64,000 nt of DNA from Magallana gigas (GCF_963853765.1 NC_088861.1:13950001-14014000); one strand, 5' to 3'; numbered from the stretch's first letter, positions 4,873-60,312 are shown. Made by a program: numbers and translations. The notes: generated by a model from the sequence alone, not told the origin.

Positions 4873-6509
4873 ATGAAGTTTTGTTGTTAATATCTCTTTG
4901 TATTATTTCATCATATTTTAAGCGATGATTTATATCTTTTAACAGATGTATCAAAGCAAACTGTTCTTGTAAAACATCAATGTAATGTATATGTAATGCA
5001 AATTCGTAGTGGAAACGCGAAAATATATACTGTACAAATGTATTTTCATCAAAATTGATTTTTAATTTAAGTATCATATACTTTCTATGATTTTTTCTAG
5101 GAATATAAATATTTGTTGTTTTGGATTTAACTGGAATGACATTATTGTAAATTGAACAGGCATTAATATGATATCATGTTTTAAAAACATATGTTTGCTA
5201 TTTATATGAAAGCTTATCATACCTTATATGATATTTTCTTAGTGGATCAATGTGTTGTACTGGATCTATCTGGAATGATACCATAGGAGACTGTACAGAT
5301 ACATGTTCTACATGAAATGTTTTCTGGAAACAATGGACGTTATGAGATTTAACAATTGTGCTACATCATAATCGTAATTTGTTTTCATGTTACATGTGCA
5401 AAATTTTCAAAAATAGATTCTTTGGAGATAACTGCTCTACAAAGTATCCTGCAATGTATTTTGGTCCAGGCTGTTTATTACAGTGTAATTGTATCACAGA
5501 ACAATGTCACCACGTTATCGGATGTTTGCAATCTTCTTCTAAAGGTGCATGGTGAACTCTCTTAACTGTTCCACTTGCTATATACGAATACATTTTAAGA
5601 ATGTTTATGTCATGCATGAAATTTTACACAACCTATCATAAAAACATAATGAATACAAATGAAAACAATATTGACAAAACGATGCATGTCCCCTGCAACA
5701 CCCTAAATTTTAAAACAATTCTTGTTGTTTAATGGGCTAAATATGTATGGAAAAAATCGGAGCTAGATTCTTAATGGACGAATCCGACTAGCTTAAAACA
5801 TTTTGCATTATTTTTGGGCTCATTCGGGTTCCTTTGGAAAGATCAACGCATCGCCGTAGCACATTTCCGATCATGTTTGTATATACGTAAATACCTGTAA
5901 ATTAAAAGTAAATGAATTTAAACTTTATATGCACACCATTATGAAGTTGCACAGGAAGTTTGAAATCAATTCGTTATAACATAACAAAACATGACTGACA
6001 TATTGCTATTAAAACTATAAATTCACCCACCCACCCTCACCACTTCCGGTTTCACTGTTAGAGGACTTAAAATAAACTCTTATTGTGTCAGTTTAGTACA
6101 TTTAAAAACATCAGTGTTTTACAAATATATTAATATTTCTAGCCGGTGAAGACACGCTTCTTACCGCCACAAAATGTCGAAAATGTATCAACAGATAAAT
6201 CTTCATCATCTAAAGTATCAACTTAGATTGCAACTACTGAAACTTATTGCGAGACAGGATCAGTAAGAATTATTATATATACATTTGGCTGTTTCGCGTG
6301 ACCTAACAACTATCACCATTTTCACAGATAGTTACATATGCACTAAGAAGAAAACAAAACATAGGGATTATTCGTCATAATGGTTCGACAACTATTATAG
6401 TGTTAATAGTGTAATGATTGTCGTAGCTGTTTCAAAATTGGTTTTAATTTTGTATAGTAAAAAAACCAATTGTACCGCGGAGTTTGCGAAACAATTAGCT
6501 GATCTATGA
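4873..6509 (+). pseudogene. Subfamily D EGF-like receptor pseudogene, copy D1
   Basis: Signal exon from ATG 4873 is frameshifted and its donor is deleted. Exon 5243-~5299 encodes GSMCCTGSIWNDTIGDCT but is followed by AT instead of GT. The EGF exon ends at 5544 (FFGDNCSTKYPAMYFGPGCLLQCNCITEQCHHVIGC) and has lost its acceptor. A decayed stalk exon lies at ~6143-6260. Terminal exon 6328-6509 reads DSYICTKKKTKHRDYSS*WFDNYYSVNSVMIVVAVSKLVLILYSKKTNCTAEFAKQLADL*, TM-like with one internal stop. Confidence 0.75.
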
Positions 6510-7690
6510 AAATACATATGTTAAAGAATAAAATTAAATTCATTATTTCACTGCCATAATAAAATTATGTTTCTTTTAAACATTTTTGACAGTTTTAATC
6601 GTTGTTTTTCTGAGAGTGATTCATTGAAATAACTTTCGTTCCTTAGTATACTAGAGGAATCGGGGTAAACATGACTAATTTACTTTTTCAACTTTGGACC
6701 TAATAATGATCAATTAAAACCTTTATAGTGTACAAAGTCTAAACCAGTGTTACAAACTGTAATTTTCAAAATAGTTCATATTTGTATATATTATGCCTAT
6801 AAGGAAATTAATGTGCTTTTGCTTTTTTTTTATTTTAAAGAGACAGTACAGCTGAAAACATATGTGTCAGTAATTTCAGATTTACCTATTGTATAGTTAG
6901 GAAATAAGAAATAACGTGTATTGTAATAGTTGTCATACATGAAAATCCCTTTCACATACTTAATTAACATAATTATGAGCTTCCGGAAATTCAAGGGTCG
7001 TACAAACCGGAATAATCTTATATCGTTTATTTGTATCATGTGGACTTTGATTGACAGTAATTGACACGTGCTGGAAACTACAAGATCTTCGTCCCACTAC
7101 GGTCATCAAGGAAAAAGAGGTTAAGGCGATTCTCTAAATGAAACACATCCTTACTTACTCGATGATTCATAAACGGTTTACCAATTTAGGTTCATTTTAA
7201 AATGAATAGACATAAATATGTCAAATAACCCCTCAAGGGGCCTCATTTATAAAAATAAATTTAGGTTGTAGAACTCCTATGATAAACATGAAAAATACAT
7301 GCTTACAAAATAATAATTGTGGTTATTTTAAAAACTTTGAACAGTTATATATGAGAAGTAGAAAAGACATATTTTCATCAACAAACCTGTCCAGGAGATT
7401 CTTCGCGAGCCCTGCATGTGTTTTGTTTACAGTGAATACGCATGCGTAATAGTATAGAAGGCTGAACCCCGAACACGTTGCAATGTATTTATGTGATAGG
7501 TTATACGTAATTATTAATTTCAATGAAACAATTAGATTTATTGCATGGAGAACTTTGTAATTTTCTGAAAGTTTTTACATTCATGAGTAGTACAAAACTA
7601 CCAAACCCGATCGGAAAAATTTTTCAAGTCAGTTTTTTGATAACATGTGCCGTACTGTCTCTTTAAGTGTTGCATTCGATATATCTGGCA

Positions 7691-8380
7691 ATAAAAGTTT
7701 TCTTGTTAATTTCTTTTTGTATTGTTTCATCATATTCTAAGCGATGTGGCAGGTATGATTTGTTTTATATCTTTTAACAGATGTATCAAAACAGACTGTT
7801 CTTGTAAGACATTAATGTAATGTATATGTAATGCAAATTCGTAGTGGAAACGCGAAAATATTTACTATACAAATGATTGCCCATCAAAATTGATTTTTAA
7901 TTAAAGTATTATATACTTTCTGTGATATTTTCTACGAAAAAAAATAGTTGTTGTTTTGGATATAACTGGAATGACATCATTGTAAATTGAACAGGCATTA
8001 ATATGATATCATGTTTTGAAAACATATGTGTGATATTTATATGAAAGCTTATCATACCTTATATGATATTTTCTTAGTGGATCAAGGTGTTGTACTGGAT
8101 CTATCTGGAATGATACCATAGGAGACTGTACAGATACATGTTCTACATGAAATGTTTTCTGGAAACAATGGACGTTTTAAAATTTAACAATTGTGCTTCA
8201 TCATGATTGTAATTTTTTCTTTATGTTACATGCGCAAAGTTTGCAAAAATAGATTCTTTGGAGATAACTGCTCTACAAAGTGTCCTGCAATGTATTTTGA
8301 TCCTGGCTGTTTATAACAGTGTAATTGTATCACAGATCAATGTCACCACGTTATCGGATGTTTGCAATCTTCTTCTAAAG
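7691..8380 (+). pseudogene. Subfamily D EGF-like receptor pseudogene, copy D2 (local duplicate of D1 exons 1-3)
   Basis: Exon 7691-7752 reads (ATA for ATG)KVFLLISFCIVSSYSKRCG with a GTATG donor. Exon 8078-8133 reads SGSRCCTGSIWNDTIGDCT with the same AT donor lesion as D1. Exon 8240-8380 reads CKNRFFGDNCSTKCPAMYFDPGCL*QCNCITDQCHHVIGC, with an in-frame TAA. Confidence 0.78.
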
Positions 8381-10078
8381 GTGCATGGTGAACTCTCTTA
8401 ACTGTTTTACTTGCTATAAACAAATGTATTTTAAGTATATTTATGTCATGACATGAAATTTTACACAACATATCATAACAACCTAATGAATATCACGTTG
8501 TTTGTTCATTACATTGAAAATCCAATCACAAGACACTTTTGTAAATAACATGATTACTTACTCAACATGTATTGCAAGAAAAGGAAAATTTTCTTTATTA
8601 TGTGAATTTTGGTTCTAAAAATACTTAAATGCAAAGAATCACCAATACCTTAACTAAACAGTTAATCTTTTTTTTTTTTTTTAATAAAATGTTTAACCAC
8701 ACGCTCTCTCTAGGCAAGGCTGCGTTGCATAAACAAAGCATCAAACTAAACTAGACTTTCGTAATCGATGCCGCCACAGAAACGCACAGCTACTTTTTTT
8801 AACCGACCGTTATCTTGTGGCCAGTGATGGGCATATTCAATAACCATCTTAAATTTGTTTCAAAGTTTTAAGCAAGTCGTTGATGTGTATGAAAAGGAAA
8901 CTTTAATAAGGAGTGATTTATTTGGTTAATTTTATAGGAATAAAAATATTTTACTTTACGTTTAATCGCCGCCGAGGTGACAGTTTCTTGTGGATTTTAC
9001 GAACCTATGCCTAGATGCTACTCATTTTGTGCAATTTTAAAAGGTAACACTAGCATTATTAAATCTAGGTGTTGTTTTTTTTTTTTTTAATTTCCAACAA
9101 GACATTTTGTATTAAGCTGTCTTTATTGATTTAATTTGAATTTGCCACATTGAGTCGAGAGTCGTTAACATGCATATCTGCTTGCGATTAATGTCGAAAT
9201 CACACTTATACATGTATAATCATTACGTTTGAAAGGTTTTACGTTTAGCTGGACCATGTAAAAAAGAAAAAAAAAACTACTAAATGATGGTACAATAACG
9301 ACTTAACAACATTTCGGAATTTTGCAGATTAGATCTAAGTTAATTTCTTGGGCGCTTTCTTTGCTTTCAACATTTAGTTTTAATGTGTGCTCAAGTTCCT
9401 GACTACTCTGATCGAGTTCGGTTTCAAACGTTTCTGCTTTTACTTTAATTAATATGGTATGTTAATACTGCTTCAGCAATTTTCCTATTTGCTCAACTTT
9501 AATATTAGGATACAGCAGGAAAAGACGAATTTACCCACAGAAAACCAAATGGTTAGCAAACTAATATGTCTTGTTTTTCGTTATACAACGTAACTTCAAA
9601 TCATGTTATTTCCCATATAAATGTTTAAGGTTTCAAATTGATTCGTTTTAATAAAGTGCTGGTTTCTTTCTATTGCGCTGAGACGCTATGGAATTTTCTT
9701 CAATTGATTGGAAAGGAATGGGAAGTATGCAACAACTTTAGCAAACTTGAAATGTACCTGTAATTGATAGGATTGTTTACAAATATAACATTTTTTAGAT
9801 CGAGTGATTTTATCAATTCTGGCGCCAGTAATTTGCATAATTTGTTCCCCCAAATATGCTTGTCTTATTAGATAGGCAGTAATCTTGTCAGCTGATTCCG
9901 GTATAAAACTCAAAATGTTCAGGAAAGCGTATCATTGACATCAACTTTGACGATCTATGTAGAAAAGGAAGTGAACAGGACGTATGAAAAACTTGAAAAT
10001 AAATGATAGAAAGTAGTTATTCACTTGATAACGTGTTGCAGGAAATTAGCTTGTTATTTTCTTGTCACGAACGAAACT

Positions 10079-11629
10079 ATGAAGTCATCTCCATTGGTAG
10101 TGAAAGTAGTGCAGTTGATTTTCTTGTGTATTGATACCTTACATGCAAATCTCTGCAGGTGAGAAATATTAATTTTTTTTAAATTTTAAATTGTGATTGA
10201 AAAAAGTGTTACTGGATAAATGCATGCATGAACATATATCAACATACATGCCAGCACTTTTTATTTTTGTATATCAGTACGGGAGGAATAGTTGAGTGCT
10301 GTCCTGGATATTTCTGGAACAAAATAGAAAATAGATGCATAGGTCAGTTTAATGCAATATTTTGAACATATCATTTCAAGCCCAAGTTCCAAATGTTGTT
10401 TTTAAACAAATGAACATAAAAATCATGCATCTTTCCTCGTGTAAATATCAATCTAAATAATCAGGATGCCTTGCTGGTACATTTGGACCACGTTGTGATA
10501 TGCCATGTCCGTACCCACAATACGGACACAACTGCTTGTCAAAATGTTCCTGCACGAAGGATCATTGTGATCCCGCTGACGGTTGTCCCGGTAAGTGACG
10601 TCTATGATAAGTATAATAAGTATGTCAATGACTTTTTGAAAATTTTAATAATTTTACCAAGAATCATAAAACAGTATTAAACCAGCGAGATCTAAATGAA
10701 ATACTGCTTTATTATTTTTAGATTGGACTAATAATTCAACAACGTTTCCACAGACCACACACATTTTAATATCTTCTGTGAAGATGAAAAATGGTATGCA
10801 TTATTTTTGTTGTTGTTGTTGTTATTTTGAAATATTTATCACAGAAATATAATTTAAAAAGAGTAATGACACAATCAAATAAAAATTAAAACGAATATAT
10901 TCCACATTGTTTGACATAATCAGTACCTTTACCATTGCAACAATACATCTGAATTATCGTATACACTGTACATAGATTTGGACTGTCAAAAAAACGGCAA
11001 TAAAATTAACACAAACATGTGTTTTAAATTTCACTTTATGAAGTTTGATTCATGATTCGTTTTGATTAAGTTTGTAATGTAAGCTAAAAATTTATAAACA
11101 TCCTTGTTTCTAGATAAAATATACCCACTTAGTGGGAGGCACTTGTGATCACCTGCAAAACAGTCCACGATTTTCCTGTTATTACATGTGTAAATATATC
11201 AAGTGTTTTGTTATTAGTGGAAATTGTATTCCTTTTATAGTTCGTATCACACCTTATCACTGTTTTTTAAAAAGAAATTTCATTCATATTAATCAAAATA
11301 TGATCCGCTTTTAAATATTGAGTTCCTTGGGTAAATATAGCATGTATCATTTGAAAATGTTCATTTATTTTCTTATAGATCTTGATTCAATTACAAAAGA
11401 TGTATCGACTCAGTTCATCCACCATAATGATACTCACACCTGTCAAGGAATCAAAAAACAGAAGCATGGGAGCGCTCCTCTTTTCCGGAACACGCTTACG
11501 GCGATTATCAGTCTCTTTTCTCTGGCTGTATTAATGTGTATTTTAAACACAGGATTAGTTTGTTACAAATCAAAGAACACACGTAATGGCCCATTATCAA
11601 AAAACATCATTTGTTATAATTCAGTATGA
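10079..11629 (+). CDS. Gene A1: small type I membrane protein (CCPGY module, EGF-like, stalk, TM, ITIM-like tail), Nimrod/Draper/MEGF10-like; ~197 aa
   Basis: Exons 10079-10158, 10278-10342, 10465-10590, 10722-10793 and 11379-11629 are all GT-AG and total 594 nt in an open frame. Protein: MKSSPLVVKVVQLIFLCIDTLHANLCSTGGIVECCPGYFWNKIENRCIGCLAGTFGPRCDMPCPYPQYGHNCLSKCSCTKDHCDPADGCPDWTNNSTT...TLTAIISLFSLAVLMCILNTGLVCYKSKNTRNGPLSKNIICYNSV*. The model requires skipping the frameshifted exon-like segment at 11114-11187. Confidence 0.8.
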
Positions 11630-13522: not shown

Positions 13523-15712
13523 ATGATTCTGTTATATTCAATTATCTGTTCTTATTTTAGTGTTTCATCTTGTTCGGAAATATGTACAGGGTAAGTTAGT
13601 TTTGATGTTAACTTTAATAACATTTCATACGTATGTGAAAAGATATATAATAACAACATTCGACCTGAGTAAGTTTAAACGTACAGTACCGATCAGACCC
13701 AACCTAACACCAGAGTAAACCCCAACTGAAATCCGGGTTAACTTTCGGGGGTTACTGGGCTTTACTTTTTGAAAATTTAAGTCCAGTTGAGGTTAACTTC
13801 GGGTCCACTTTGGGTCTACTCGCAGTTTGCTTTTGGGTACCTCATTCAACATTGAAATGTGAAGTAGACCCGTCTTTTATCTGATTATCTTATTGTCTCC
13901 CATCCCTTTTATAAGATACAATTTTAATAAGACGCATTTTTTTTCATCACAACTATTAAGGAGTTTTTTTCCGTGTAAATACATGTTTAATTGATTGTGT
14001 ACTTTCTTTAACATGTAGTTCATATGTTACTGACCACGTGTATGTAATGCTAATGAGAATCGTTCAAGAGAATAAAAACTACCAACACAATTTATATTTT
14101 TGAGTGTTCAAATACAGCACAAAATCACAACGAGATAATCTTAATATCCGTATTAATCCGTTGATGAAGATTTCAAATATCAACAAAAAGTGATGCCATT
14201 AAACTAGGCAATTGCATGGCTATAAGTACACGGAAGATTAATTACTCTTCATTTATACTGTAGGAAATTTGTGCGGGATAATTTTTTTTATAAATTGTCA
14301 ATTCTAAAATGGGCTGTTAGGATGACATTTTGTAAATTCGCCACATATGCGAAACACGGGGTCTTGAAAACTATACAATACAATGTTGCAATTTTCAGTG
14401 GAAATTTTATTTCGTAGACAGTATGGAACACCCACGAAAACTCTTTACATATCTGTAAAACATTCCACATCAACGAAATGATAAAATTCACTAAAATGTT
14501 TATTTAACATTAAAAAATTGTTACTTGTTAGTAAAAGTATAATGATCTTGCTTGAGAATTACTTTTTATTCAAACGTTAGATATTAAGACATTATTATCC
14601 CAATTAAAATATTTAGCATTATTCATGTATTTAAATTCTAAATATCATTTTAATCAGCAGGCTACATCATTTATTGGGGATATTATATCGTAAATTCCAT
14701 AAGAAAATCAAATCCAATGCTCCATCAAATCTCTGTACAACATTCCAAACCATATATGATACATTGAAACAGATTTTCATTTAATGAAATACTCTTTAAT
14801 ATAAACAAATATTCTAAATTTAGATATGACGGAACAACAAAATGTTGCCTGGGATATGTTTGGAATGAGACTCTTGGAGAATGCTTAGGTACTTACAAGC
14901 TTTCTGTTTACTTTTGACATAATGAACATTTTCCATGTTTCTTGATAATGAGTGTTAATTTTATTTTTTTCAGTCTGCAATGATGGTTATATCGGAGAAA
15001 ACTGTACAACAACTTGTCCTGAACTGTACTATGGTCGGGAATGTCGACTTAAATGCAATTGTAACAAAGATCAATGCAATCATATAGCTGGATGTTCAAA
15101 GTCTGCAGTATCAGAAGGTATAAATTTGTAATCACAGTGTAACGTTTTTATTTTTTTTACTAGTGACATTAGATATAGTATAGTAATAGTAAAAACGTTG
15201 ATCACATAACTGCTGAACCTATACCCCGATCCGATTTTTATTTTGCAATCAGTTTTACATGTACATGTATACTGCTTTGCATGACAACACAAATAAAATA
15301 TTGTTTTTTGTGTGGTTGGAATACAGTGTTATATTGAATAAATGTTTGTTATGTTTCAGTATTTTAAGATTATAATAAAACAAGAACAAAAAACTCAATT
15401 TATGTAGTAAAAATGTAATCCAAGAGCCGAGAAAAATTAGTTTGCATGACTCTTGAATTTTACACACCTTCTATTTCATCAACTAAAAAGGAATTTGGTG
15501 GGTTTTATATTGTTATTCCTATTAGACTCATACTGTATGGGGTCATTCTTATTTATGTAGGGACGATGAACAATGTTACTTCACCATCGAAACTAAATCG
15601 AATTTTAACCATCAAATCATCAACATCTAAAGTGCTAGGTAAAATATCTTCCACCACTTCCACAGAATTTAACCTTTGCACAGGAGAGCAAACTAAAGAA
15701 CTTGGTTATTAA
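13523..15712 (+). CDS. Gene B1: predicted secreted CCLGY/EGF-like protein (stop before the ancestral TM); ~142 aa
   Basis: Exons 13523-13590, 14824-14888, 14974-15117 and 15561-15712 are GT-AG and total 429 nt in an open frame. Protein: MILLYSIICSYFSVSSCSEICTGYDGTTKCCLGYVWNETLGECLVCNDGYIGENCTTTCPELYYGRECRLKCNCNKDQCNHIAGCSKSAVSEGTMNNVTSP...CTGEQTKELGY*. A decayed TM-coding remnant follows to ~15819. Confidence 0.8.
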
Positions 15713-16938: not shown

Positions 16939-17030
16939 GTCTGTTTGTTATATCTGTAACTTTTTTCAGTACATACTTGTACCTCAAACTCAGAAAGAAA
17001 CCAAACGTAAATGTGCCAGAGACTTTGTAA
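16939..17030 (+). pseudogene. 3' fragment of the last exon of a subfamily C gene (cassette 1)
   Basis: Reads ..LFVISVTFFSTYLYLKLRKKPNVNVPETL*, nearly identical to C1 36660-36751. No upstream C exons are visible, so this is a deletion breakpoint. Confidence 0.8.
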
Positions 17031-18861: not shown

Positions 18862-19030
18862 AAATGATTCAGTAGCGCACAGTGGGGTACAGTGCTTATC
18901 AGTGCTCTGTACAGCGGCGTACAGTCGGATACAGTGGAAGTCAGTAGTGGGGTACAGTGCTGTTCAGTAGAATTGTATAATAGGGTGCAGGGGGTACAGT
19001 GGAAGTCAATAAAATGTACAGTGAGGTACA
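18862..19030 (+). repeat. Degenerate (TA)CAG/CAGTG-rich low-complexity repeat (second copy ~38839-39010)
   Basis: TACAGT and CAGTG motifs recur many times in ~170 bp, in both duplicated copies. Confidence 0.6.
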
Positions 19031-21099: not shown

Positions 21100-22411
21100 A
21101 TGAAGTCGTCTGCATTGGAAGTGAAAGAAGCGCAGTTGATTTTCGTTTGTATTGCTGCCTTACATGCGAATGTCTGCAGAAGGTGATATATTTTTGAAAT
21201 AAGTGTTACTGAATATGCGCATGCGTGTACATATATGAACAGATATGCCAACACTTGTTTTGTTTCCTTTTTTATATCAGTACGGAAGGAATTGTTGAGT
21301 GCTGTCCTGGATATTCATGGAATAAAATAGATGCATAGGTCAGTTTAATGCAATGTACTCTTTATATATCTTTTCAAGTCTAAGTTCCATACGATGTTTT
21401 AAACAAATGCACGAAATGTCATGCATCTTTCCTATTTTAAATATAAATCTTAAAATTCAGGATGCCGTGCTGGTACATTTGGACCACATTGTGATATGCC
21501 ATGTCCGTATCCACAATACGGACGCAACTGCTTGTCAAAATGTTCCTGCACGGAGGATCACTGTGATCCTGCTGACAGTTGTCCCGGTAAGTCACATGCA
21601 TAATACGTATAAGGAGTATGTCAATGACGTTTTGAAATTTTTAATAATTTTACCTAGAATCATAAAACAGTATTTAAACAGCAAGCTCTAAATGAAACAC
21701 TGCTCTATTATTTTTAGATTGGACTAATAATTCAACAACGTTTCCACAGAGCACACACATTTTCATTCATCTGTGGAGGTGAAGAATGGTATGCATAAAT
21801 AATAAAATTAACAGAAACATGTGTGTTTTTAATTTAACTGTATAAAGTTTGATTCATGATTCGTTTTAATTAAGTTTGTATTTTAAACTAAAAATGATTA
21901 ACATCCTTGTTTCTACATAAAATATATTCACCTATATACTGGGAGCCACTTGTGATCAACAGCAAAGCATTACCCGATTTTCCAGTTATTACATGTGTAC
22001 ATATATCAAGTGTATTATTATCAGTGAAAATTGTGTTCCTTTGTTAATTCGTATCATAACCCATCACTGTTTTTTTTTTAATAAATTTCATTCAAATTAA
22101 ATAAATTGAATTCCGTTGGTAAATATTACATGTATAATTTGAAATTGTTCAGTTATTATCTTATAGATCTTGATTCAATTACAAAATAGGATCGACTCAA
22201 TTCATCCACCATAATGACACTCACACTTGTCAAGGAATCAAAACACAAAATCATGGGGGCGCTCCTCTTTTCCGGAACATGCTAACGAGGTTTATCAGTC
22301 TCTTTTCTCTGGCTCTCTTCATGTTTATATTATACACAGGATTGTTATAAATCAAAGATCACACTTAATGGCCCATTATCAAAAAACATCATTTGTTATA
22401 ATTCAGTATGA
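21100..22411 (+). pseudogene. Gene A2: pseudogene paralog of A1
   Basis: Exons at 21100-21182, 21281-21338, 21461-21586, a stalk exon from 21717 and a last exon from ~22168 to 22411. Exon 2 lacks one of the two AAAATAG units of A1, giving a 7-nt frameshift and a TAG. The last exon has an early TAG (ACA AAA TAG) and a further TAA. Confidence 0.85.
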
Positions 22412-23790: not shown

Positions 23791-25347
23791 ATGATTCTGT
23801 TATGTTCATTGTTGTTCTCTTATTGTGGTGTATCAACTTGTATTCAGATATGTAAAGGGTAGGTTTGTCTTGATGTATACTTAAATAACATGTTCATGCT
23901 TTCGTTAAAAAAAATACTTGATTATAGCAATCGACTTGTGTGAGTTTAATCCTAAAATAAGAAATAATTTTAATAAGCCACTTTTTTTTCATCTGAACGG
24001 TTTAGGATTGTCACTCATTTATTTGCAATACAGTGTACTTCATTACCTTAATCTTAATTTTACAGCATTCTTGTCAGTACATGTATGTTCAGTTGACTAC
24101 ATACTTCCTTTACCATGCAGTTTATATATTATTGACCACGTAAATCTAATGCTAATTAGGATCGTTTAATAGATAAAAAGCAACCAATGCAATTGTAATT
24201 CTTAAGTTATCAAATTCAGCACCAAAGTATAAAACGATAGTATTATTATTCGTATTTCTCCGTTATTCAGATTTCAAATATCAACAAAAAGTGATATTTA
24301 AAAGGTCGGCAATTCCATTAAAAAACGCGGAACAGACGATTTTCAGTGCAGGAAAGTCAAATTAAGCTTTTCATTGACATCGTAGGCACTCGTTTTGATA
24401 CAATTTTTGGGCTATTTTTTGTAAAGTGTGAATTTCAAATGGGCTGTTGGAATGACATTTCTTGAATTTGACACACGCACTAAAAACGGGGCCTTGTAAA
24501 ATATACATGACAATGTTGAAACATTCAGTGAAAGAGGTACCCGCGAAAATCCTTCAAATATCTAACGACATTCAACAAAATCTACTAGAATTTAAATTTT
24601 ACTTTAAAAAGTCTTACTTCTACATAAAAATATGATGATCTTGTCTTTTTGGGTTACTTATCGAAAATATTTTAGCATTCATTATATATGTAATTTCTAA
24701 ATATTACTGTAATAAGAAGGCTTCAACATTTATTAAGATGTATCATATCGTGAATACTATAAAAAAAATCACCAAAGGCCGCCATCAAATCTCTGTACGA
24801 AATTCCATATCATAAATGATTTAGTCCACCTTAACAGACTTGATTTATTGAAAGCTTTATTTATATAAACGAATATTTCTAAATTTAGACAGGACGAAAA
24901 AACAAAATGTTGCCTGGGATATATTTGGAATGAGACTCTTGGAAGTTGTTCAGGTATTCACAAGTTTTCTTTTAATTTCTGACGTAAGGACATTTTCTTG
25001 ATAATGAGCGTTTATTTTCATTTTTGTAAGCCTGCAGTGATGGTTATATTGGGGAAAACTGTACAACAAATTGTCCTGAACTGTACTATGGTCGGGAATG
25101 TCGACTTAAATGCAACTGTACCAAAGATCAATGCAATCATATAGCAGGATGTTCAAAGTTTGCATCAGAAGGTATTCTTTTTTAAGTATTGTGTAAGTTT
25201 ATTTTTTTGGCATAAATGATAAAATACATGTATATGGTATGTGTGATTATTAAGACATATTGACGACGTAATCAGGTAACTAATACTGCGATTTATTATT
25301 TTTTTTATAATTTTTTTTTTTGACAAAAGCACACAAACCGAATGCCG

Positions 25348-25385
<38 letters not shown>

Positions 25386-26169
25386 CGGATACTTTGTTAA
25401 AATAAATAAAATAGCTTGTTTCATTTTGCGTCGCAGCTGTCGCTAGGATTTGAATCACCGTGAAACCCTTGTTAATATGTACGTATTCTGTATGTATTGT
25501 TTGCACAGATGTACCGATCATAGTTGCTAGCATGACTTAAAAATATTAAACAACTCGAAGTTGCATTATGATTTGAATCACCTTGAAACCCTTATTAATA
25601 TGTACATGTACGTATTACATGTATGTACGTATTGTTTGCACATAGTTGTTGGTATGACTTTTAAATATTAAACAACTTGATGTTACATTAGTATGTGCCT
25701 GACATAGATAAATAGTTTTGCTGATTTTACTTTTTATTACTTTAATATGTTTTGATTGAGATTTTTATTTGATTTAAGAAAATTTGAGCATTTTAATTCC
25801 AACGTCGAAAACTATTCGAGTTTCAACTATTAAATAATCAACACCCAAAGTCATTGCTAAGTATTCCAAAGTTTGGTATAAGAAAAATATTTAAAGTTAT
25901 GTTATACCTGTAATACAATTACTATCCAACTAATATTTTTCGGAGCCAATATGCAAACCGATGAGCTAGTTTTCTAAATATTTTTTTTTACAGATAATAC
26001 ATCCACTACCCTTTTGGCAGAACAAAACCCTTGCACAAGGAAGAAAGCAGAAGCACTTGGTAATCCATCGTTACTACTTGGCATGTACTATGCTGTTGTT
26101 AGTCTTGTGATTTTTTCAGCTGTTATGATCATATTATCTATAGCTTTGTTTCTATTCGCTAAACGTTGA
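23791..26169 (+). CDS. Gene B2: tail-less type I membrane CCLGY/EGF-like protein; ~149 aa
   Basis: Exons 23791-23858, 24889-24953, 25031-25171 and 25994-26169 total 450 nt in an open frame (in-frame upstream ATG at 23782). Protein: MILLCSLLFSYCGVSTCIQICKGQDEKTKCCLGYIWNETLGSCSACSDGYIGENCTTNCPELYYGRECRLKCNCTKDQCNHIAGC...NPCTRKKAEALGNPSLLLGMYYAVVSLVIFSAVMIILSIALFLFAKR*. Confidence 0.85.
25351..25382 (+). repeat. (GT)n microsatellite in B2 intron 3
   Basis: Direct reading of the sequence. Confidence 0.95.
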
Positions 26170-33896: not shown

Positions 33897-34024
33897 NNNN
33901 NNNNNNNNNNNNNNNNNNNNNNNNNNNNNNNNNNNNNNNNNNNNNNNNNNNNNNNNNNNNNNNNNNNNNNNNNNNNNNNNNNNNNNNNNNNNNNNNNNNN
34001 NNNNNNNNNNNNNNNNNNNNNNNN
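33897..34024. other. Assembly gap (N run)
   Basis: 128 N. Confidence 0.99.
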
Positions 34025-44218: not shown

Positions 44219-44265
<47 letters not shown>

Positions 44266-44368: not shown

Positions 44369-44372
<4 letters not shown>

Positions 44373-48832: not shown

Positions 48833-48854
48833 GGTTCAAAACCTTTCAAAATAC

Positions 48855-50030: not shown

Positions 50031-50138
50031 CTCGCAAGCAGTGGCAGCAATTCAGGAAGTTGGCACCAAGCGGAAACAATTTTCCAGAGCCAATACCAAG
50101 ACCATTAGTCAGCATGATCTACAACTTCAAATAAACAA

Positions 50139-51035
50139 TTGGCGGCATCTATTTCAAAAAGCACAAAGAAGTCATATGAAACTGGATTGACAGCTTTTGA
50201 AAATTTCCGCCTTGACCTTGGGTACCAGCAAATCTGGCCTCCACCCCTTGATCATGTAGTGCAGTTTATTGCATATTTATCCTGTAAAGATAACACTTAT
50301 TCTACAGCCAGGGCCTATGTATCGGCTATTAGTTTTCAGAGTAAAATTCACAATATTGCAGACATTACAAAAAACTTTATAGTGAGTAAGCTTCTCGAGG
50401 GTATGAAAAGAATTAAGAAAAGCGTTGATTCACGGCTACCAATTACATTGTCTTTGCTTACAAAAATTTTTCAGATTTTGCCAGCAATTTGTTATAATTC
50501 CTATGAAATAAGGTTATTTAGAGCTGCGTATGTATTAGCCTTCCATGGGTTCTTTAGGGTTGGAGAATTTTCTTTGTCAGTAGGCAACAGCGTACATTCA
50601 ATTCTTCAAGTATCTGATGTACAGTTTGAGTTGAATTTCTTTAGCGTCTGTATCAGAATAAGAAGTTCAAAGTCTGATCAACATAGCAGAGGTGTAACAG
50701 TGGCAATAAATAAGATTGGTGGTATTTTATGTCCAGTTGGGTGTTTAAATGCTTTCTTGTTAGTTAGAGGCAAAAGTGATGGCCCACTGTTCATCCATTC
50801 AGCATGTTCAGGAGGCAGGGCTTTAACTATGTATCAGTTTTCTTCCGTGTTGGAAAAGGCGTTGAACACCCTTGGGATACAAGGAAGGTTTAAGGCTCAC
50901 TCCTTTAGAATTTGGGCAGCTACAGCTGCATTTGAGGCTGGTTGTTCTCCAGAAGCTATAATGGAAGCAGGTCGCTGGAAATCTAAGGTGTACAAATCAT
51001 ATATTCGTTGTCCAGTCTTGGATTCATGTCAATAG
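50139..51035 (+). CDS. Tyrosine recombinase (integrase) of the Ngaro element, open frame, 298 aa
   Basis: Catalytic motifs present: FFRVGE (R), SKSDQ (K), HSFR (H-x-x-R), GRW (W) and YKSY (Y). The usual HSFRIG is HSFRIW here. Confidence 0.85.
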   Translation: MAASISKSTKKSYETGLTAFENFRLDLGYQQIWPPPLDHVVQFIAYLSCKDNTYSTARAYVSAISFQSKIHNIADITKNFIVSKLLEGMKRIKKSVDSRLPITLSLLTKIFQILPAICYNSYEIRLFRAAYVLAFHGFFRVGEFSLSVGNSVHSILQVSDVQFELNFFSVCIRIRSSKSDQHSRGVTVAINKIGGILCPVGCLNAFLLVRGKSDGPLFIHSACSGGRALTMYQFSSVLEKALNTLGIQGRFKAHSFRIWAATAAFEAGCSPEAIMEAGRWKSKVYKSYIRCPVLDSCQ

Positions 51036-51191
51036 CTGCTAAGTAGCATTAAGAGAGAAAAGGATATCGCATTAGTAAGATTACATGTTTTCATTGCTAA
51101 AAAAAAAATAATAAATAATAAAAAAAAAAAATTAAAAAAAAAACAAAACTCCATATTAACTTTCTAAAGTATTGCAGAAATTGATGTTAAG

Positions 51192-51709
51192 GTCTGGTGT
51201 GTTGGTTCGTCAATCATCAAACATGCATTTATTCTGGATTGAAATTTCTACATCTTAAGAGCAAGCTGCATTTACTCAGAGAAATTGAAGCTGCTCCAGA
51301 CTTCCTGGTAATGCATGCTGGGGGTAACGATATTGGTCTTAAACGTATTCCATTATACGAGTTGATTGAGATTGTTTGTGATCACTTAGAAATTATTAAG
51401 CAACGATTTCCTAATTCAGTATTGGTTTGGTCTCAGATACTTCCACGTAAAACTTGGAGGTATTCGCAGGATGTTCAGGCAATGAACAGGTCCCGTGTAC
51501 GAGTTAACAGAGCAGCTGCTCTGAAAGTTTTAGCATTAGGGGGTTGCTACATCAAATACCCAAACTTGTTGAAAGACATTAATCAGTTTTTGAGATCTGA
51601 TGGGGTTCATCTCACTCAGTTGGGTTATAAACTTTTTCTGAACAACATTCAGGGGGGACTAGAGTATTTTGCTCTGAAAATGGGACATGTTTATCCTAAC
51701 GAATTCTGA
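51192..51709 (+). pseudogene. SGNH/GDSL hydrolase ORF of the Ngaro element (5' frameshift)
   Basis: Block I VWCVGSS (51192-51212) lies in a different frame from the downstream HAGGNDIG and RSDGVHL (DxxH) blocks of ORF 51197-51709. Confidence 0.8.
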
Positions 51710-52904
51710 ATAGGCGAGATTGGTCGTGGGTCAGTTGATTGGTGGCTCCCCCCCCCCCCCCCCAAGTGTGGGATGACTGCGAGTTTCCTCAGGCAATTTG
51801 CAGCCATGTGGCGTTCGCGCGCACCAAATCAACTGATGCCTACGTATTGTTGTGCTGACTTATTGAAAAACATTGTGACAATTGATTTGTGCATGTGAAG
51901 TTGCTGAACTGTTGAACCAGTGAATTGTGTAAAGTTGTACTTGTCTTATTATATAATTTTCATTTAACAATAATTCAACATATAATTAAATAAGTTTAAA
52001 GTACTTAAATAGGTGACCATCCGCGGTAAACCTGGGGTGGTCAATTTCAAACTGTAATATTGATGATATGTTGATTGTTGATGAATATTTGTTGTGACTT
52101 TTGTTTGAGTGGGTTTGCCCAGGTGTTGTCAATGGCATCCCACATTTTATTTATGCCACGGCCAATACTCGCCAAATAAATCTTTAAACATAATATGTTT
52201 TGGGGTAAGTTTTCTCTGTGTGAATAATCAACTTCACTCGCCGCCATCAAAACTTTTGTCACGCGAAGTGTGCGAACTAATCCGGCAACTATGACATTTC
52301 AAGAATTAAAAAAAATATCATTTGCAAAAGATTTCGAAATTAAATGACATAACTTTATTACATTAAGCTTTTATTATAAAACCATCAATATATTTTGATA
52401 AATAAAACAATAATTACGAGTTATCGGAGCCTTAACAGTCAACAACGAAAAGTGCGTTAAATTGCGTGATTGCAGGGAAAATGTATGTGTGTCAATATGC
52501 GTAATTGTGGGGCAACGGTATATGCGTTAAAGAGCGTTACTGCGGGAAGGGGGTTAAGGTTTCAAATTGATTCAAGCGCTGGTTTCCTCCGAATGCGCTA
52601 AGGCGTTGTGGAAATTTCTTCAATTGATTGGAAAGGAATTGGAAGTATGCAACAACTTTAATTTGGCGAACTTGAAATGTACCCGTAACTGATAGTGATA
52701 AAACTGTTTTAAACGGTTTTCAAGGATACAAGTAAGCCTAATATTGTAACAGCATGTGTCTAACGACATGATTAGTCTTTATGACCTTGTCAGCAAATAC
52801 AATACATGTACTCCACTGGATCGCATGCTGACTGTCGTTTTTCAAACTAATTGTTAGACCGTAACTAATCACCTTATTGTCTACGGAGTTTTCCGTTTTT
52901 TCCA

Positions 52905-53090: not shown

Positions 53091-54197
53091 ATCACTTTTT
53101 GTTGATTTTTGAAATCTTTAAGAAATACTAATCTACTCTTGATATTTTCTGCGCTGAGTTTGATGGCTTTAAGTTTGCTTTTCTTTTCCAAACTAAGACT
53201 ATTAGCATAACATGTTCCCTAATCTATGAACTTCACGAAAAAAGAAGTACAGATTACACTGTATACAAACAACTTAAATATCATTAGAAATGCTGTAAAA
53301 ATTAGTGAATTAGCAAATGTAATAATTATAAACACAACAGAGCAAATGTTTCAGTAAGTACCAAGCCTAAAACCGTTAAAATAGATAACGGCTCTCTAAA
53401 GATATATTTCCTCCCAAATTAAATGTTTTTAAGGATAAAGCTTACTCAAGTAGATTGTTGCTATTATGTATTTTTATCCAAAGGTATGAAAATGTTATTA
53501 ATGTCTACATCGTATTGACCGTAGAACTTACAAAAAGATGACTTTAAACGAGAGCTAGAAAATTTCATAACAAAACACGGAATAACAGACATATATAATT
53601 ACTAGGAAGTAAAATAAGCTTTTGAGTCATGTTGTAGATCAATTTAATTTGTATCGGCAAATTATTGTTAAGTATCTTTTTTCAATGGTTGTTGGGATGG
53701 TATTTTGTGGATTTGCCACACGTAATAAAAACGAGTTCGTGTAAAATATACATGACAATGTTGCAACTTTCTTTGGGAATGTTATATTTCGTTGATAATG
53801 TGGGGCACCCACGAAAACCCTTCGAAACGTATACATGTATCAGTAAGCCATCCAACATCAATAAATTCTATAAATTAATAAAAATCCACTTGAATTGGAA
53901 TGTTAATTAAAAACAATAAGTACAAACGTAAAAAATGTACTCCTTTTGTGATGTAATACGACAAATTATTTACAAAATTCATTGATTCAATTTCCTTACA
54001 AGTTATAATTTCCTAAACATCTGGTTTTGTAAAAATAAAGTGAAAACGAGGAAAAGTACTACGTATTTTTGAAATACATAGCCTTAGTTGTTTCCCGTTT
54101 GAAAGTGCCATTTACATGTGCACTTTTTTTGAAACGTAATAATAAGGAAAAAGTGAAATATTTGTTTCATATAATTGATCGTGAATTACTGCAAACA

Positions 54198-57100
54198 ATG
54201 ATTCTGTTATGTTCATTAATTTTTTCTTATTGTGGTGTTTCATCTTGTTCGCAGATATGTAAAAGGTAAGTTAGCTTTGATGTTAACTTTGATAACATAT
54301 TCATACTTTTATGTCAAAATAATAAAATTACAACAATCGACTTGAGTAAGTTTAAATGTACAGACAGATAAAACTTTGTAAAAAAAATTATGATCACATT
54401 TGAATTCTTGGTCTTCGGATCCTAGGCAGAAAAATATTTGGGGCGAGCGAACGATTTAATAACTTTAAAATTAAAATAAAAGAAAGTTTGAAAATGTTGA
54501 AGCCACATAGAAAAAAAATAGAGGCGAGCAATTACATTTTATTTTAAGATATCATTTTTACCTTGAAATACAAGCAAAAAGAAGTAAAAAGTTGATGACT
54601 GTATTCGTCATTGTACCAGACCCCTCCTGATCGCTAATTCTATCCACACATACAGGCATTAATTACTTGTAAACCTTGCTCACAATTTACCGGAAAATTT
54701 TTGGTAAAACCAATGTAAAAAAAATCAATTAAGCACAATCATAGCAAATAAAAAGAACCAAAAATGTAGCGGGAAACAGAGCAGAAATTTCCGGGTGCAG
54801 GATTTATTTTCTAGTATTATTTTTTGGAAAGCCCTTCTGCACGTGCGCACGGATTTGGCGACCAAGAAATCAAATATGTGTCGCCTAAGCCACAATTTTT
54901 ATTTCATCTCAACGTATTAGGCTTGCTACTTTTTCATTTGCACGGTGCACTATATTCTCTTATTCTTAGTTTTACAATATTCGTGTAAGTACTTGAATGT
55001 TCTCGTTTGTTTAGTTGATTATGTACTTCCTTTATCGTGCAGTTCTTTTATCACTGACGTAAATGTAATGCTAATGAGAATCGTTCAAGAGAATAAAAGC
55101 AACCAATACAATTGGTATTCCTAGTCTTCAAATTCAGAACAAAAGTACAGAGATATGATATTTACATCCATATTTATACGTTTAAGCAGATTTCAAATAT
55201 CAACTAAAAGTGATATCTCTAAACTATACAACTGCACAAGAAAACATGGAACAACATACGGAAATAAGTACACGAAAGTCAAATTAAGCTTTTTATTTAT
55301 ACCGTAGGTACATGTATATTGAAAATTGTGAGGGCTAATTTTGTGAATTGCCAATTTTAAAAAGGGCGGCCCGTGAATTCACCACATACACTATAAACAG
55401 GGTCTTGGAAATGATACATGACAACGTTGCAACTTTCAGTGGAAATGTTATTTCTTGCACAATATGCCCATGAAAACGCTTCAAATTATTTGTTAGACTT
55501 TCCATATAAAAAAAATGATAAAATTTACTAGATTTTGAATTTTACTTTAAAAATTGTTACTTATTAGTGGAAGTGTAAAGATCTTGTTTTTGGAGTTGCA
55601 TTTTTTTCAAACATTAGATTTAATAAATCAGTAATTAAGGTCAAGATCTAGTAAATGAAAGTTGCCTACAGGTTCATAAAATTCAAGATATAGATTTTGT
55701 TCATACATGTAACAATAGCTTTGTTTGATAGGGTGTACCGGGGCTAAAATGTTTGGTAAACACAATGAACAATCATGTTATAAACTGTTATTTTCAATGA
55801 AATATAAAGGAATTGAGGCACAAATTTAGGAGTTTTGTCCATTTTTTGCTAATAAAATACGTCTAGAATGCCTACAGTCTCCCCAAAAAAGGAAATAAAG
55901 ATGCTTTTGACTCCTCTTTAAAATGTTGTCAAATAGAGTATCGGGATTACTTTTCTCATGATTTAACAAATAATTTAGGAAATTATTTAGTTTTCTACAT
56001 AAAGCCTTTTAAGCCATAAAGTACGGGGGAAAACATCTTCAAATCAATTATGACGTAATGATAGTTTTAGCACCGAAAACACACTATGAAATCGTTTACT
56101 AGAATTTGACCTGAAGGCATTATTATCCAAATTAATATATTTTATTATTTATATTCATGAATGAATTATGCAGATTGTGAATATTATTTTAATCAATGGG
56201 TTTCAACATTTATTCTTAGACACTGAAATCGCATCAAAATCTCTATCAAATCTCTTCGACGACATTCCAAATCATATGTTTTGAAATAAAACAGTCATTC
56301 ATTTAATGAAAGCTTCCTTACAATTAACAACAATTTCTAAATTTAGACATGACGAAACAACAAAGTGTTGTCTGGGATATATTTGGAATGAGACTCTTGG
56401 AGAATGCTTAGGTACTTACAAGCTTTTTGTTTACTTTTGACATTATGAACATTTTCCATGTTTCTTGATAATGAGCGTTTATTTTATTTTTTAAGCCTGC
56501 AATGATGGTTTTATTGGGGAAAACTGTACTGTAACGTGTCCTGCACTGTACTATGGTCAAGAATGTCGACTTAAATGCAATTGTACACAAGAGCAATGCA
56601 ATCATGTAGCTGGATGTTCAAAGTCTGTATCAGAAGGTATTTTTTTTTTATCAAAGCTTAACTTTATTATGTTGGTACGATTGGCATTTAATATGATATA
56701 GTAATAATAAAAACATATTGACGACATAATTCGGAACCTGTACCGCAATCAGATTTTTTCTTTTTAAAATCAATTTTACATGTATATTTCTTTCCATAAA
56801 AACAAAAATATTTTGTCGGGTGGTGTGTGATTCAAATACGTTGTTAAATTGAATAAAATGGTGTGGTTTTTCTGTAATTGTAGTATCACGCAATATTTTT
56901 CCTTCTAAAAACCGAGTAAAAATACTTTGCATTACTCTTAAATTTTCAAAACTTTTTTTTTTTTCAAGATTCGGTGGTTTTTATTTTCAGCTATTCTATA
57001 TAACTCAGTTTGTTTTGGGTTATGTTTTATGTAGGAACGATGAGCAATGTCACTTCACCAACGAAAACAAATCGAACTTCGTTATCAACATCTAAAGTGA

Positions 57101-57597
57101 TAGGTATTATATCTACACCCATTTCCACAGAATTTAACCTTTGCACAGGAAAGAAAATTGAATAAAATGTTGTGGGTTTTTTTGTAATTGAAGTATCATG
57201 CAATATTTTTCCTTCTAAAAACCCAGTTTCTAGAGTAAAAATACTTTGCATTACTCTTAAATTTTCACAACTTGTTTTTTTTTATGATTCGGTGGTTTTT
57301 ATTTTCAGCTATTCTATATAACTCAGTTTGTTTTGGGTTATGCTTTATGTAGGAACGATGAGCAATGTCACTTCACCATCGAAAACAAATCGAACTTCGT
57401 CATCAACATCTAAAGGGATAGGTAATGTATCAACCCCCATTTCCACAGAATTTAACCTTTGCACAGGAGAGAAAACTAAAGAACTTGGTTTTTCATCACT
57501 AATACAGGACATGTACTATGCTGTTTTTAGTCTTGTGAGTGTTGCAGCTCTTTTTGCCGTGTTATATATAGCTTTGTTTTATTTAGCTAAACGTTGA
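54198..57597 (+). CDS. Gene B3: CCLGY/EGF-like protein with duplicated last exon (membrane form ~172 aa; putative secreted form ~134 aa)
   Basis: Exons 54198-54265, 56347-56411 and 56496-56636 are followed by either 57035-57165 (stop, no TM; 405 nt total) or 57353-57597 (TM MYYAVFSLVSVAALFAVLYIALFYL then AKR*; 519 nt total). All junctions are GT-AG and both frames are open. Confidence 0.85.
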
Positions 57598-57844
57598 AGT
57601 TAAATGTGCTAAAGTTTTTACATTGATCAATCAAAATCCAAGTTATCAATTCAATCATGAACTCCTCCTAGGCAACGGATCCCATCTCTATCTTTTTAGA
57701 GATCCGGATTTACTTTAATATAATTTATATTTCGCTATATAGATTTTTGAGACGGTTCACAGTTTGTTATTGCCTTTTTTTCATTGTAATAAATCATTTT
57801 TGAAAAAGCAAGATATTTATTTTTGTAATTGTTGTTCAATTTTA

Positions 57845-58530
57845 TACAAATATTGACTGGGGTTGAGGGCAACATTGATTATATTAGCCCCCCAGGGACG
57901 AAATATTGCCCGACGCGAAGCGGAGGGCAATATTTTTGTGCAAAGGGGGCTAATATAACCAATGTTGCCTGAAAAACACAGTCAACATTTGGTTTGTTAT
58001 ATGAAGAAAAAAACTAAAATTTAAGAAAGTAATTGAAAACAGATCGCCGTAACTTTTTCAGCTCAACAAAAAATTCACGAATTCAATTTTGTGCAAAGTT
58101 CATTTCCAAAATATCCTAATTATCAAACAGTGACTGGTGATATTCCGCCGACCGTACGAATTAGCATACAGCTGTTCTACCTGATTTTCCCTCACAGTAA
58201 TTCGGAAATCCTTATATCCGTTATGATAGCAAACCGTCGCATTGCGCGTCGGTTTTTTTTACTTGCCTTGACTGACTGTCTTTTATGACGTCACCTTGTT
58301 TTGGAGTCGCGAAAGGTATTTACGTCATTGTTTACAAATCAACAAATCAGAGGCGATAATTTGAGATAGAGGGAATGTTCTCTAGATATTATTCCTAGCC
58401 GGTCAATATAAAAAAAAATATCAACCGGTCAATTTTTTTTTTTGACGAGCTAATATTACAATTATTGCCTATTCGTCTATGTAGAGTTATATAGTGAGAA
58501 TATACTACTGAATATCACAAATCAATATAA
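57845..58530. mobile_element. Palindromic non-autonomous DNA element with nested inverted repeats and a CGC-GAA-GCG loop
   Basis: Arms 57868-57892 and 57945-57969 match 24/25. Inner arms 57901-57911 and 57925-57935 match 11/11. The block is absent from the paralogous B1 3' flank (~16030). Confidence 0.7.
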
Positions 58531-59082
58531 CTAATATCGGAATTGTTGGAAATACAATATTTCACTAAGTAAGAGGTCCAAAGGTCACTTCATGTTCATC
58601 AAATCAGGGATTTTAAAGGTGTCAAAATATAATAAAATGACGGTTTGTGTTTAAACTCAGAAGGTTGACTGAATGACAGAGCTTATATCTGTGTACGGTT
58701 ATTTCTTGATAACATTTGATCAATGAATTTTAGTGGCACTGGAAATACCGAGTTGTTGAGTTATGAAACGTGCTCGTAACTGTTGGTTTAACTGATTTCA
58801 CTGGCGACTAACTGCCTTTTTATGAGTTATAAATTCGTAATCTTGAAATTAAAAAGTGTTTACTATCCAAGCGTGAAAGACATAATGACGTGCTAAATGA
58901 ACCTAATTGCAATGCTCTGCTCCACCGGAAGGAGACATTTGATATTTTTACACGGAAGAAAATCAGTGTTATGTGGCCATCAGACGGGCAATAGACTCAA
59001 CAAGGCAAATTCATTAATAATAACACGTGATGGGAATTTCATCTACTAAATTTGATGAGTTTTCAAAATGTGTGGAGAAAAA

Positions 59083-60312
59083 ATGGTCATAACAATGATC
59101 ATATTCATTTTTCATCTTGGATTTTCCAATTCAAAGCTTTGCGATAGGTAATTATTGTATGTTATTATCATCTGTTTAATTGAATCGTTTGTTTATCTGC
59201 TTATCGATTATAGTAAAACAATTTAATATAAAAAATTGCGCACATTTCATTTAACGAATTAGCATTAATGCGTCTTTAATTGTTATACAAATTTCACCTG
59301 TATTTTACAACATCAACCGCCTACATTGTATTTTACATACCCAGTATATAATTATAACTTTTTATCGAAACGTTCAGTATATTATTGTTGTTTATATGCT
59401 GTCCAATATTTCAACATATAACGTGAAAAATAATTTCATTAAGATCCGGAGTTCTGGAATGCTGCCTTGGATATATTTTGAACAAGATAGAGAACAGATG
59501 TATTCGTAAGTTTTAACTCAGACTCTGGATATTCAATATGTATTTGCATGCATATTCACTGTCGCTCATATCTATTTGTTTTAATGTACAGCATGTGACA
59601 AAGGATATATTGGACACAACTGTAGTGACCCTTGTCCTCCTCCATATTATGGTCAGGAGTGTGCGTCAACGTGCAACTGTACTGATAACCAGTATTGTCA
59701 TCACGTACATGGATGTATACAACCACAAGGTAAATGTCACGGAATGATGATCCTTCCCCTTTTTCTACATACTGTTATGATTTCACTTATATTCGTGGGC
59801 ATTAATTTTTGTGGATAAATCGAAAATCACAGTTTTAAGGATACTCTGCCAATAATTCCAGCAATACATATTTTATTAGAAATTGCATCACAACGTTTAC
59901 TTACATTTAATTTCGTGAATAAACTCAACAACGAAATCCACGATTCTTTTTATTTTACAATTGTTGATAAAAACCACTATCAAAAGTAGCATATATTTTT
60001 ACTTCCAAGTATATTAGAAACTTCCGTATATCTCGCTCATAAAATTTTGTTTTTTATTTCATTATTGTTCTGAAAATTCAATATCCATATAGTTTTATAT
60101 TTAAGGTAATAAACAAAGTGTTTAAAAATATTTATCCTGCAGGTGATGCCTGTCAAAAAACAAAGCTAAAACCAGAGAAACACCCAAGTGTCACTTCTCT
60201 TATGTGTGCTGCAGTAGTTTGTCTGTTGATCATATCTGTAATCTGTTTCACTTCATATGTGTACATCAGATTCAGAATGAAACAATATGTAGATTTGCGA
60301 CAAGCTTTGTAA
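59083..60312 (+). CDS. Gene C2: type I membrane CCLGY/EGF-like protein with a YxxL tail; ~144 aa
   Basis: Exons 59083-59147 (in-frame ATG also at 59068), 59444-59505, 59592-59729 and 60143-60312 total 435 nt in an open frame. Protein: ..SGVLECCLGYILNKIENRCIPCDKGYIGHNCSDPCPPPYYGQECASTCNCTDNQYCHHVHGC..SLMCAAVVCLLIISVICFTSYVYIRFRMKQYVDLRQAL*. Confidence 0.85.

Follow-up and report, generated by a model that had tools for sequence, protein, structure and literature searches.

Nine loci of an expanded oyster family of small single-EGF membrane proteins related to MEGF10, SCARF and Draper

Receptors of the Nimrod superfamily carry a CCxGY motif just before their EGF-like repeats, and their NIM repeat has the consensus CxPxCxxxCxNGxCxxPxxCxCxxGY (PMC4073527). 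In the Nimrod clusters of Drosophila and Anopheles (NimA, NimB, NimC, Eater), CCxGY comes after a signal peptide, and membrane and secreted members are mixed (PMC4073527). Draper, CED-1, MEGF10 and PEAR1 are type-I membrane proteins with about 15-17 EGF repeats after a CCxG[YW]-type motif, and the SCARF proteins combine many repeats with a long cytoplasmic domain. Clusters of another kind are formed by the KIR, LILR, SIRP and Siglec receptors, which are arranged in tandem, undergo birth-and-death turnover and differ in their cytoplasmic tails; paired receptors display near-identical ectodomains on opposite tails. To our knowledge, bivalves have no adaptive immune system and depend on innate receptors, whose families have expanded. 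Here we describe a stretch of 64,000 nucleotides (nt) from Magallana gigas (GCF_963853765.1, NC_088861.1:13950001-14014000), called the window below, in whose coordinates all positions are given. In our judgement it probably holds nine loci of a lineage-expanded oyster family of small type-I membrane glycoproteins with putatively surface-binding heads.

A six-frame scan of the window for CC.G[YFS].[WL]N found 11 occurrences on the + strand and 0 on the - strand, against 0.015 expected (mean of 200 shuffles). The CCxG motif marks nine loci sharing a common exon plan, with all introns of the GT..AG kind. Five of them are intact, encoding 149-197 amino acids (aa), one is stopped before its transmembrane (TM) segment and three are decayed (Table 1). 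The exon bearing the motif, here called the CC exon, is 62-65 nt long with AG/GT borders, is entered at phase 2 and left at phase 1. Approximately 85-125 nt 3' of it lies the EGF exon (126-144 nt, phase 1-1), which encodes C..G..G..C...CP...YG..C...C.C....C....GC and is the only exon of this type in each gene. In all intact copies CC.G[YF] comes after a hydrophobic N-terminal exon, a putative signal. Self-comparison of the window revealed three paralogous gene types (g10k/g21k, g13k/g23k/g54k and g35k/g59k) and one decayed type (r5k/r8k).

Last exons, containing stalk, TM segment and tail, were located by phase and hydrophobicity, and signal exons by ATG-to-GT searches, those of the g13k/g23k/g54k type being placed by means of a C. 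angulata gene of 169 aa. An original prediction, made from the DNA alone, had proposed the same exon plan with its sizes and phases, six open spliced frames (g10k, g13k, g23k, g35k, g54k and g59k) and contrasting C-termini; all of this was reproduced, the C-termini in every copy listed. Its gene models were right in their C-termini and incomplete elsewhere: they missed a stalk exon of 72 nt in g10k and one of 69 nt in g54k, and left unplaced the first exon of the g13k/g23k/g54k type, which we find at 13523, 23791 and 54198, 1.0-2.1 kb 5' of the CC exon.

An assembly gap at 33897-34024 is more than 1.4 kb away from the nearest family exon and is crossed by no gene model, and no Cys-rich exon-like frame occurs within 1.5 kb of it. 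It lies inside a stretch (approximately 33420-34767) that is missing from the syntenic C. angulata locus, where its flanks map collinearly without a change of orientation. Another run of N, at 63132-63332, is outside the family locus.

RNA-derived contigs from two studies were compared with window positions 54190-60189, covering g54k and g59k, and confirmed seven splice junctions. Those of g54k (54265|56347, 56411|56496, 56636|57035 and 57103|57353) occur in contigs of runs X1, X2 and X11, those of g59k (59147|59444, 59505|59592 and 59729|60143) in contigs of both studies. At g59k some contigs show 0 differences from the window, and intron bins are empty. Raw reads of the polyA run X20, of which ~1% was scanned, gave no coverage of these genes. 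All junctions in these contigs lie within units and none connects g54k with g59k. Together with the small RefSeq orthologues described below, this bears out the prediction that we are dealing with separate small genes and not with one multi-EGF gene.

In minor forms of g54k either the stalk exon or the CC exon is skipped, the latter with a shift of frame. In one X1 contig, a 54265|56496 junction leads from the signal exon to the EGF exon without the 65-nt CC exon and into early stops; this form is probably an unproductive isoform. The alternative g54k form devoid of a TM segment, which had also been predicted, was not seen. Two stretches in the same region, 55590-55989 and 57790-58589, reach a contig depth of hundreds to thousands, compared with ~5-40 on gene exons, and contain many loose contig ends and fixed differences from the window. 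They are probably dispersed transcribed repeats, separate from the genes.

The predicted protein consists of a signal peptide, a head of ~65 residues with 12 Cys, a stalk, one TM helix and a tail of 2-22 residues. The head combines the hairpin encoded by the CCxGY exon with one EGF repeat of MEGF10/SCARF/Tie2 type. The stalk is disordered and rich in Ser/Thr and N-glycosylation sites, and in some copies it is lengthened by an extra symmetric exon. In an AlphaFold2 model, the head has a per-residue confidence score (pLDDT) of ~90-97; C-terminal to it come a disordered stalk and a single TM helix. The whole-protein family profile matches PDB entry 6u11 (an EGF-like domain protein) with E 1.7e-12, and the head-only profile with 2.7e-8. 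Tie2 EGF repeats are matched by the family profile at E ~2e-6 and 2.6e-7, and the N-terminal EGF repeats of SCARF1/SREC-I by the head-only profile at E 1e-4. Searches of other kinds returned little: single-exon translations gave only sub-threshold Pfam matches to DSL and stabilin-EGF, and phmmer with the C. angulata protein P0002 against PDB sequences gave only chance matches to picornavirus polymerases.

The best Foldseek matches were MEGF10/11, PEAR1, SCARF1/2, Draper, CED-1 and Tie, always on internal EGF repeats; residues 389-438 of SCARF2 are 43% identical to the oyster head in the fold alignment. Fold assignment relies on consistency across these matches, not on single scores. Profile and fold matches support the relation of the head to Draper/CED-1/MEGF10 proposed in the original prediction. 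The MEGF/SREC-type pattern C..G..G..C...C......G..C...C.C....C....G.C is present in 161 of 177 family proteins.

The oyster proteins share with Draper, CED-1, MEGF10 and PEAR1 the type of EGF repeat, its position after a CCxG[YW]-type motif and the type-I membrane topology. They differ in possessing one repeat, in their very short tails and in the lack of a Pfam EMI domain; of an EMI-like segment, the heads have the CCxGY end alone. NPxY was found in 0 of 6 window proteins and in 4 of 177 family proteins. Unlike the SCARF proteins, they have neither many repeats nor a long cytoplasmic domain. As in Nimrod proteins, a predicted signal peptide precedes CCxGY, and the oyster cluster, too, mixes membrane and putatively secreted members, but the NIM consensus, strict or relaxed, is absent from all 6 window proteins and all 177 family proteins. 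The oyster proteins therefore resemble Nimrod, Draper and SREC proteins yet lack defining features of each, as NIM is absent and NPxY nearly so. We conclude that the family represents the MEGF10/SCARF/Draper kind of receptor in a miniaturised form specific to oysters.

How large is this family? An exhaustive HMMER search with P0002 retrieved 966 representative clusters at E<=1e-3, of which 136 reach E<=1e-10, and the top 150 clusters are nearly all of 85-390 aa. All 20 named relatives that were looked up come from Ostreidae and are labelled 'uncharacterized', 'MEGF10' or 'draper-like'; the family spans Crassostrea/Magallana, Saccostrea and Ostrea. Relatives carry 1-4 EGF repeats, and CC.G[YF] stands at about residue 30 in 75 of 153 family proteins. 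Small RefSeq proteins known from C. angulata and from C. gigas, such as XP_052708147.1, XP_052708149.1, XP_019919210.2, XP_011420847.1 and the product of LOC128183230, are direct orthologues or paralogues of the window genes, with the same exon plan, sizes (137-198 aa) and tails; the set of intact copies differs between the species.

In the genome to which the window belongs, the CC-exon profile has 67 matches. Of these, 64 fall within C9:13.30-14.42 Mb, with the + strand carrying nearly all of them. About 6% of this ~1.1-Mb head-to-tail array, which holds at least 60 small single-EGF genes, is represented by the window (C9:13.950-14.014 Mb); the cluster is thus far bigger than the original prediction could see. 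The EGF-exon profile gives at least 150 scored matches (1,799 candidates), with clusters on C10, C2 and C3. The array was sampled by scanning 20 alternating 10-kb pieces, in which the same three gene types, a remnant with two CC exons and further subtypes were detected. Since the same gene types and remnants recur across the samples, a multi-gene cassette, comprising about three genes, has been duplicated again and again to give rise to the array.

Comparison with C. angulata, whose relatives were retrieved with a stop-free stretch over the last exon of g10k, points to rapid turnover. The C. angulata locus is syntenic (88-92% DNA identity in the best-aligned stretches), and NCBI models it as individual genes encoding 137-198 aa. 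Its g10k counterparts lack ~350 bp, a loss that runs from the last part of the signal exon through the CC exon into the first part of the EGF exon (L001 1049-1052 and L002 9974-9977 against window 10117-10473); because of this loss, the RefSeq protein P0001 (137 aa) begins within the EGF exon. In the g23k counterpart the EGF exon is interrupted by an insertion of 1 nt, and the positional orthologue of the g21k pseudogene, the P0002 gene, is intact. Different copies being broken in the two species, the array evolves by birth and death. The ratio of nonsynonymous to synonymous substitution rates (dN/dS) in the heads is 0.16-0.34 and 0.24-0.44 for two gene types, every Cys being retained, and dN/dS gives no overall signal of positive selection.

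By analogy with scavenger receptors of class F, MEGF10 and Draper, the heads would be cell-surface binding modules, probably on haemocytes, binding ligands or other EGF-repeat receptors. The short tails would most likely serve as trafficking signals (C-terminal YxxPhi; terminal Ser/Thr-Val or Ser/Thr-Leu) and not for signalling through immunoreceptor tyrosine-based inhibitory or activation motifs (ITIM or ITAM). The ITIM-like string of g10k, a terminal YxxV, would also be similar to the lysosomal sorting signals (C-terminal YxxPhi) in LAMP1 and CD63. The C-termini of 72 TM-bearing relatives are enriched for Val (16) and Leu (10), common ends being -SV, -TV and -TL; a terminal Ser/Thr-Val/Leu may act in trafficking or docking as a conserved motif and may be of more importance than the Tyr. 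A role of the family in haemocyte recognition is plausible: in C. virginica, 27 'draper-like' transcripts are enriched in circulating agranulocytes (PMC13070813).

Several points weigh against this interpretation. No Pfam domain, EMI and EGF included, was matched in 68 full-length members (E<=0.01). Foldseek E-values are weak, from 5e-3 to 0.1, also with the head-only model, because the domain is tiny. The trafficking role of the tails is suggested by motif resemblance, the function of every member by analogy, and the 'draper-like' genes of PMC13070813 may be larger ones. The RNA comparison covered two window genes in runs whose tissues are coded, and haemocyte expression of these small genes is presumed. 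Finally, dN/dS is ~0.4-0.9 for the g13k/g23k/g54k type; given this value and several dead copies, the array may be partly non-functional.

A more far-reaching proposal would make the array an oyster haemocyte immune recognition complex, with head diversity providing the ligand range and tail classes (ITIM-like/YxxPhi, tail-less and truncated/secreted) tuning uptake versus inhibition. We regard it as unlikely; if true, such a complex would be a functional analogue of the leukocyte receptor complex, built from a Draper/SREC-type module.

Equally unlikely, in our estimate, is a non-immune role, either in cell-cell recognition or adhesion, for instance through homotypic or heterotypic EGF-EGF contacts, or in modulation of large multi-EGF receptors. 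SCARF1-SCARF2 and MEGF10/11 act via trans interactions of EGF repeats, and the oyster repeat is of the same type as theirs and that of Tie2; the tails, moreover, are too short for signalling alone. However, such a huge lineage-specific expansion with rapid turnover is commoner among defence and environment-facing genes than among those of developmental adhesion.

The original prediction had interpreted the locus as a paired-receptor or allorecognition-like one, where inhibitory members with ITIM, activating members without a tail and soluble decoys would share one ligand specificity. Tails indeed differ inside one cluster, as they do among KIR, LILR, SIRP and Siglec genes, and clusters of immune receptors typically evolve, like this one, by birth and death with losses that are reciprocal between species. 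The g10k end, ..IICYNSV, fits [SIVL]xYxx[ILV] and is kept in the close relatives P0001, P0002 and P0004, and among TM-bearing members an ITIM-like string occurs in 15 of 72 and YxxPhi in 29 of 72. Nevertheless, the g10k string equally fits YxxPhi, its single Tyr stands at the extreme C-terminus, and a chance ITIM-like match is estimated for ~6% of tail tyrosines. The only YxxL of the window proteins, YVDL in g59k, is CVDF in the C. gigas orthologue.

The heads argue against the paired-receptor reading. Among the three gene types the EGF exon is 39-44% identical, and the CC exon 33-38% between the g10k type and the g13k/g23k/g54k type, reaching 70-75% only when the g10k type is compared with the g35k/g59k type. 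From one tail class to another, heads are 33-44% identical, far from the near-identity of paired receptors, and they are neither immunoglobulin nor lectin domains. No Lys, Arg, Asp or Glu is present in the TM segments of g23k, g54k, g35k and g59k, the tail-less copies included, and the dN/dS values give no overall sign of positive selection. The supposed soluble member, g13k, lacks a TM segment because of a nonsense mutation, immediately 3' of which a frameshifted fossil TM segment is still found. This truncation is old: the C. angulata orthologue carries the same stop together with an additional upstream one; exons 1-3 are open in both species, and the TM-coding sequence at the 3' end is decaying. 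We consider the paired-receptor reading decidedly unlikely and reject its strict form for its dissimilar heads, uncharged TM segments and unconserved YxxL.

It is very unlikely that the array consists mostly of decaying duplicates with little or no function and that the transcripts are noise. Broken or truncated loci make up four of the nine in the window, both g10k and g23k have damaged orthologues in C. angulata, and dN/dS of the g13k/g23k/g54k type is ~0.4-0.9. Yet in five window copies the frame is complete, none of the 12 Cys of the head is lost and the splice sites are canonical; dN/dS is 0.16-0.44 for two gene types, splicing is correct in two independent studies and the family persists in Crassostrea/Magallana, Saccostrea and Ostrea.

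Some public gene models join neighbouring members: the UniProt/Ensembl M. gigas models P0006, P0157 and P0160 (289-315 aa) are fusions of two or three adjacent family genes, P0160 running through a complete gene including TM segment and tail and then through EGF exons of the next genes, and the NCBI range of LOC128183230 extends into the next unit. That the exons are parts of one long multi-EGF gene, as these models imply, is scarcely credible and was rejected, because every unit is equipped with an ATG and signal exon at one end and a TM exon and stop at the other, entry into the CC exon is in phase 2 whereas preceding units end in a stop, P0160 would carry two TM segments, RNA junctions stay within units and RefSeq models are small.

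We thus return to the family of small type-I membrane glycoproteins as our preferred interpretation. No description of it was found in the literature on Nimrod, CCxGY, draper-like or MEGF10 in oysters; automatic annotation in sister-species databases already lists members, whose function is uncharacterised there, and the RefSeq names 'MEGF10' and 'draper-like' overstate these proteins. What emerges is a very large oyster-restricted family, invisible to Pfam, which counts 966 clusters in the database and has at least 60 of its genes in a single array. If active in haemocyte recognition, it would constitute a sizeable unstudied share of the oyster immune repertoire and would show, as a natural experiment, to what extent a module of engulfment receptors can shrink.

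Individual loci have features beyond those listed in Table 1. The remnant r5k has a stop in its signal-like region and is 90% identical to r8k; double-CC remnants of its kind are also present in the sampled array pieces L014 and L019. The 72-nt stalk exon of g10k is supported by P0002, and the C. gigas 'protein draper-like' P0003 skips the corresponding exon. In g21k, the CC exon (21281-21338) has lost 7 nt and the stalk exon (21718-21788) 1 nt, and the last exon is frameshifted. An alternative start of g23k may be provided by an in-frame ATG at 23782, 9 nt upstream. The tail of g35k (..KLRKKPNVNVSDIL) contains no Tyr, and its orthologue is a RefSeq 'draper-like'/MEGF10 protein of 149 aa (P0060, P0159). 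The stalk exon of g54k arose by a ~320-bp tandem duplication (56846-57165 / 57155-57483).

Table 1. Family loci of the window and their exons. Labels are those of the original prediction.
Feature	Label	Position	Strand	Remarks
r5k, decayed copy		4876..5655	+	two CC-type exons (motifs 5114, 5253); EGF-like exon minus one Cys
r8k, decayed duplicate of r5k		7695..8492	+	no ATG; stop within EGF exon
g10k, intact, 5 exons, 197 aa	A1	10079..11629	+	tail ..NIICYNSV, stop ending at 11629
g10k exons		10079-10158, 10278-10342, 10465-10590, 10722-10793, 11379-11629	+	match C. angulata P0002 (198 aa)
g13k, 142 aa	B1	13523..15712	+	premature stop after ..ELGY, ending at 15712, before fossil TM
g13k exons		13523-13590, 14824-14888, 14974-15117, 15561-15712	+	
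g21k, pseudogene copy of g10k		21100..22411	+	three exons broken
g23k, intact, 149 aa	B2	23791..26169	+	ends ..FAKR directly after TM, stop ending at 26169
g23k exons		23791-23858, 24889-24953, 25031-25171, 25994-26169	+	
g35k, intact, 149 aa	C1	35490..36751	+	ATG 35490 (144 aa from 35505); stop ending at 36751
g35k exons		35490-35569, 35864-35925, 36016-36153, 36582-36751	+	
g54k, intact, 5 exons, 195 aa	B3	54198..57597	+	ends ..LAKR, stop ending at 57597
g54k exons		54198-54265, 56347-56411, 56496-56636, 57035-57103, 57353-57597	+	
g54k stalk exon		57035-57103	+	69 nt, phase 1-1, rich in Ser/Thr and N-glycosylation sites; in RNA contigs
g59k, intact, 149 aa	C2	59068..60312	+	ATG 59068 (144 aa from 59083); ends ..YVDLRQAL
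g59k exons		59068-59147, 59444-59505, 59592-59729, 60143-60312	+	

Other elements are interspersed with the family genes. A mobile element at 47549-51900, with GC content up to 38-43%, contains a tyrosine-recombinase open reading frame (ORF) at 50118-51032 (Phage_integrase with SAM-like N-domain), a GDSL/SGNH-hydrolase-like ORF at 51191-51706 and an upstream ORF (47549-48418) with 'PGPSQSxNV' repeats; it resembles elements of the Ngaro/DIRS or Crypton type. Just 5' of it lies a tandem satellite (45796-47217) of about eight copies with a period of ~169 bp and 69-82% identity. Finally, a repeat unit of ~4 kb, two ORFs of which have no Pfam match, is located 3' of both g13k (16939-20785) and g35k (36660-40775); its copies are 87-92% identical, and it may be part of a duplicated cassette or a transposon.

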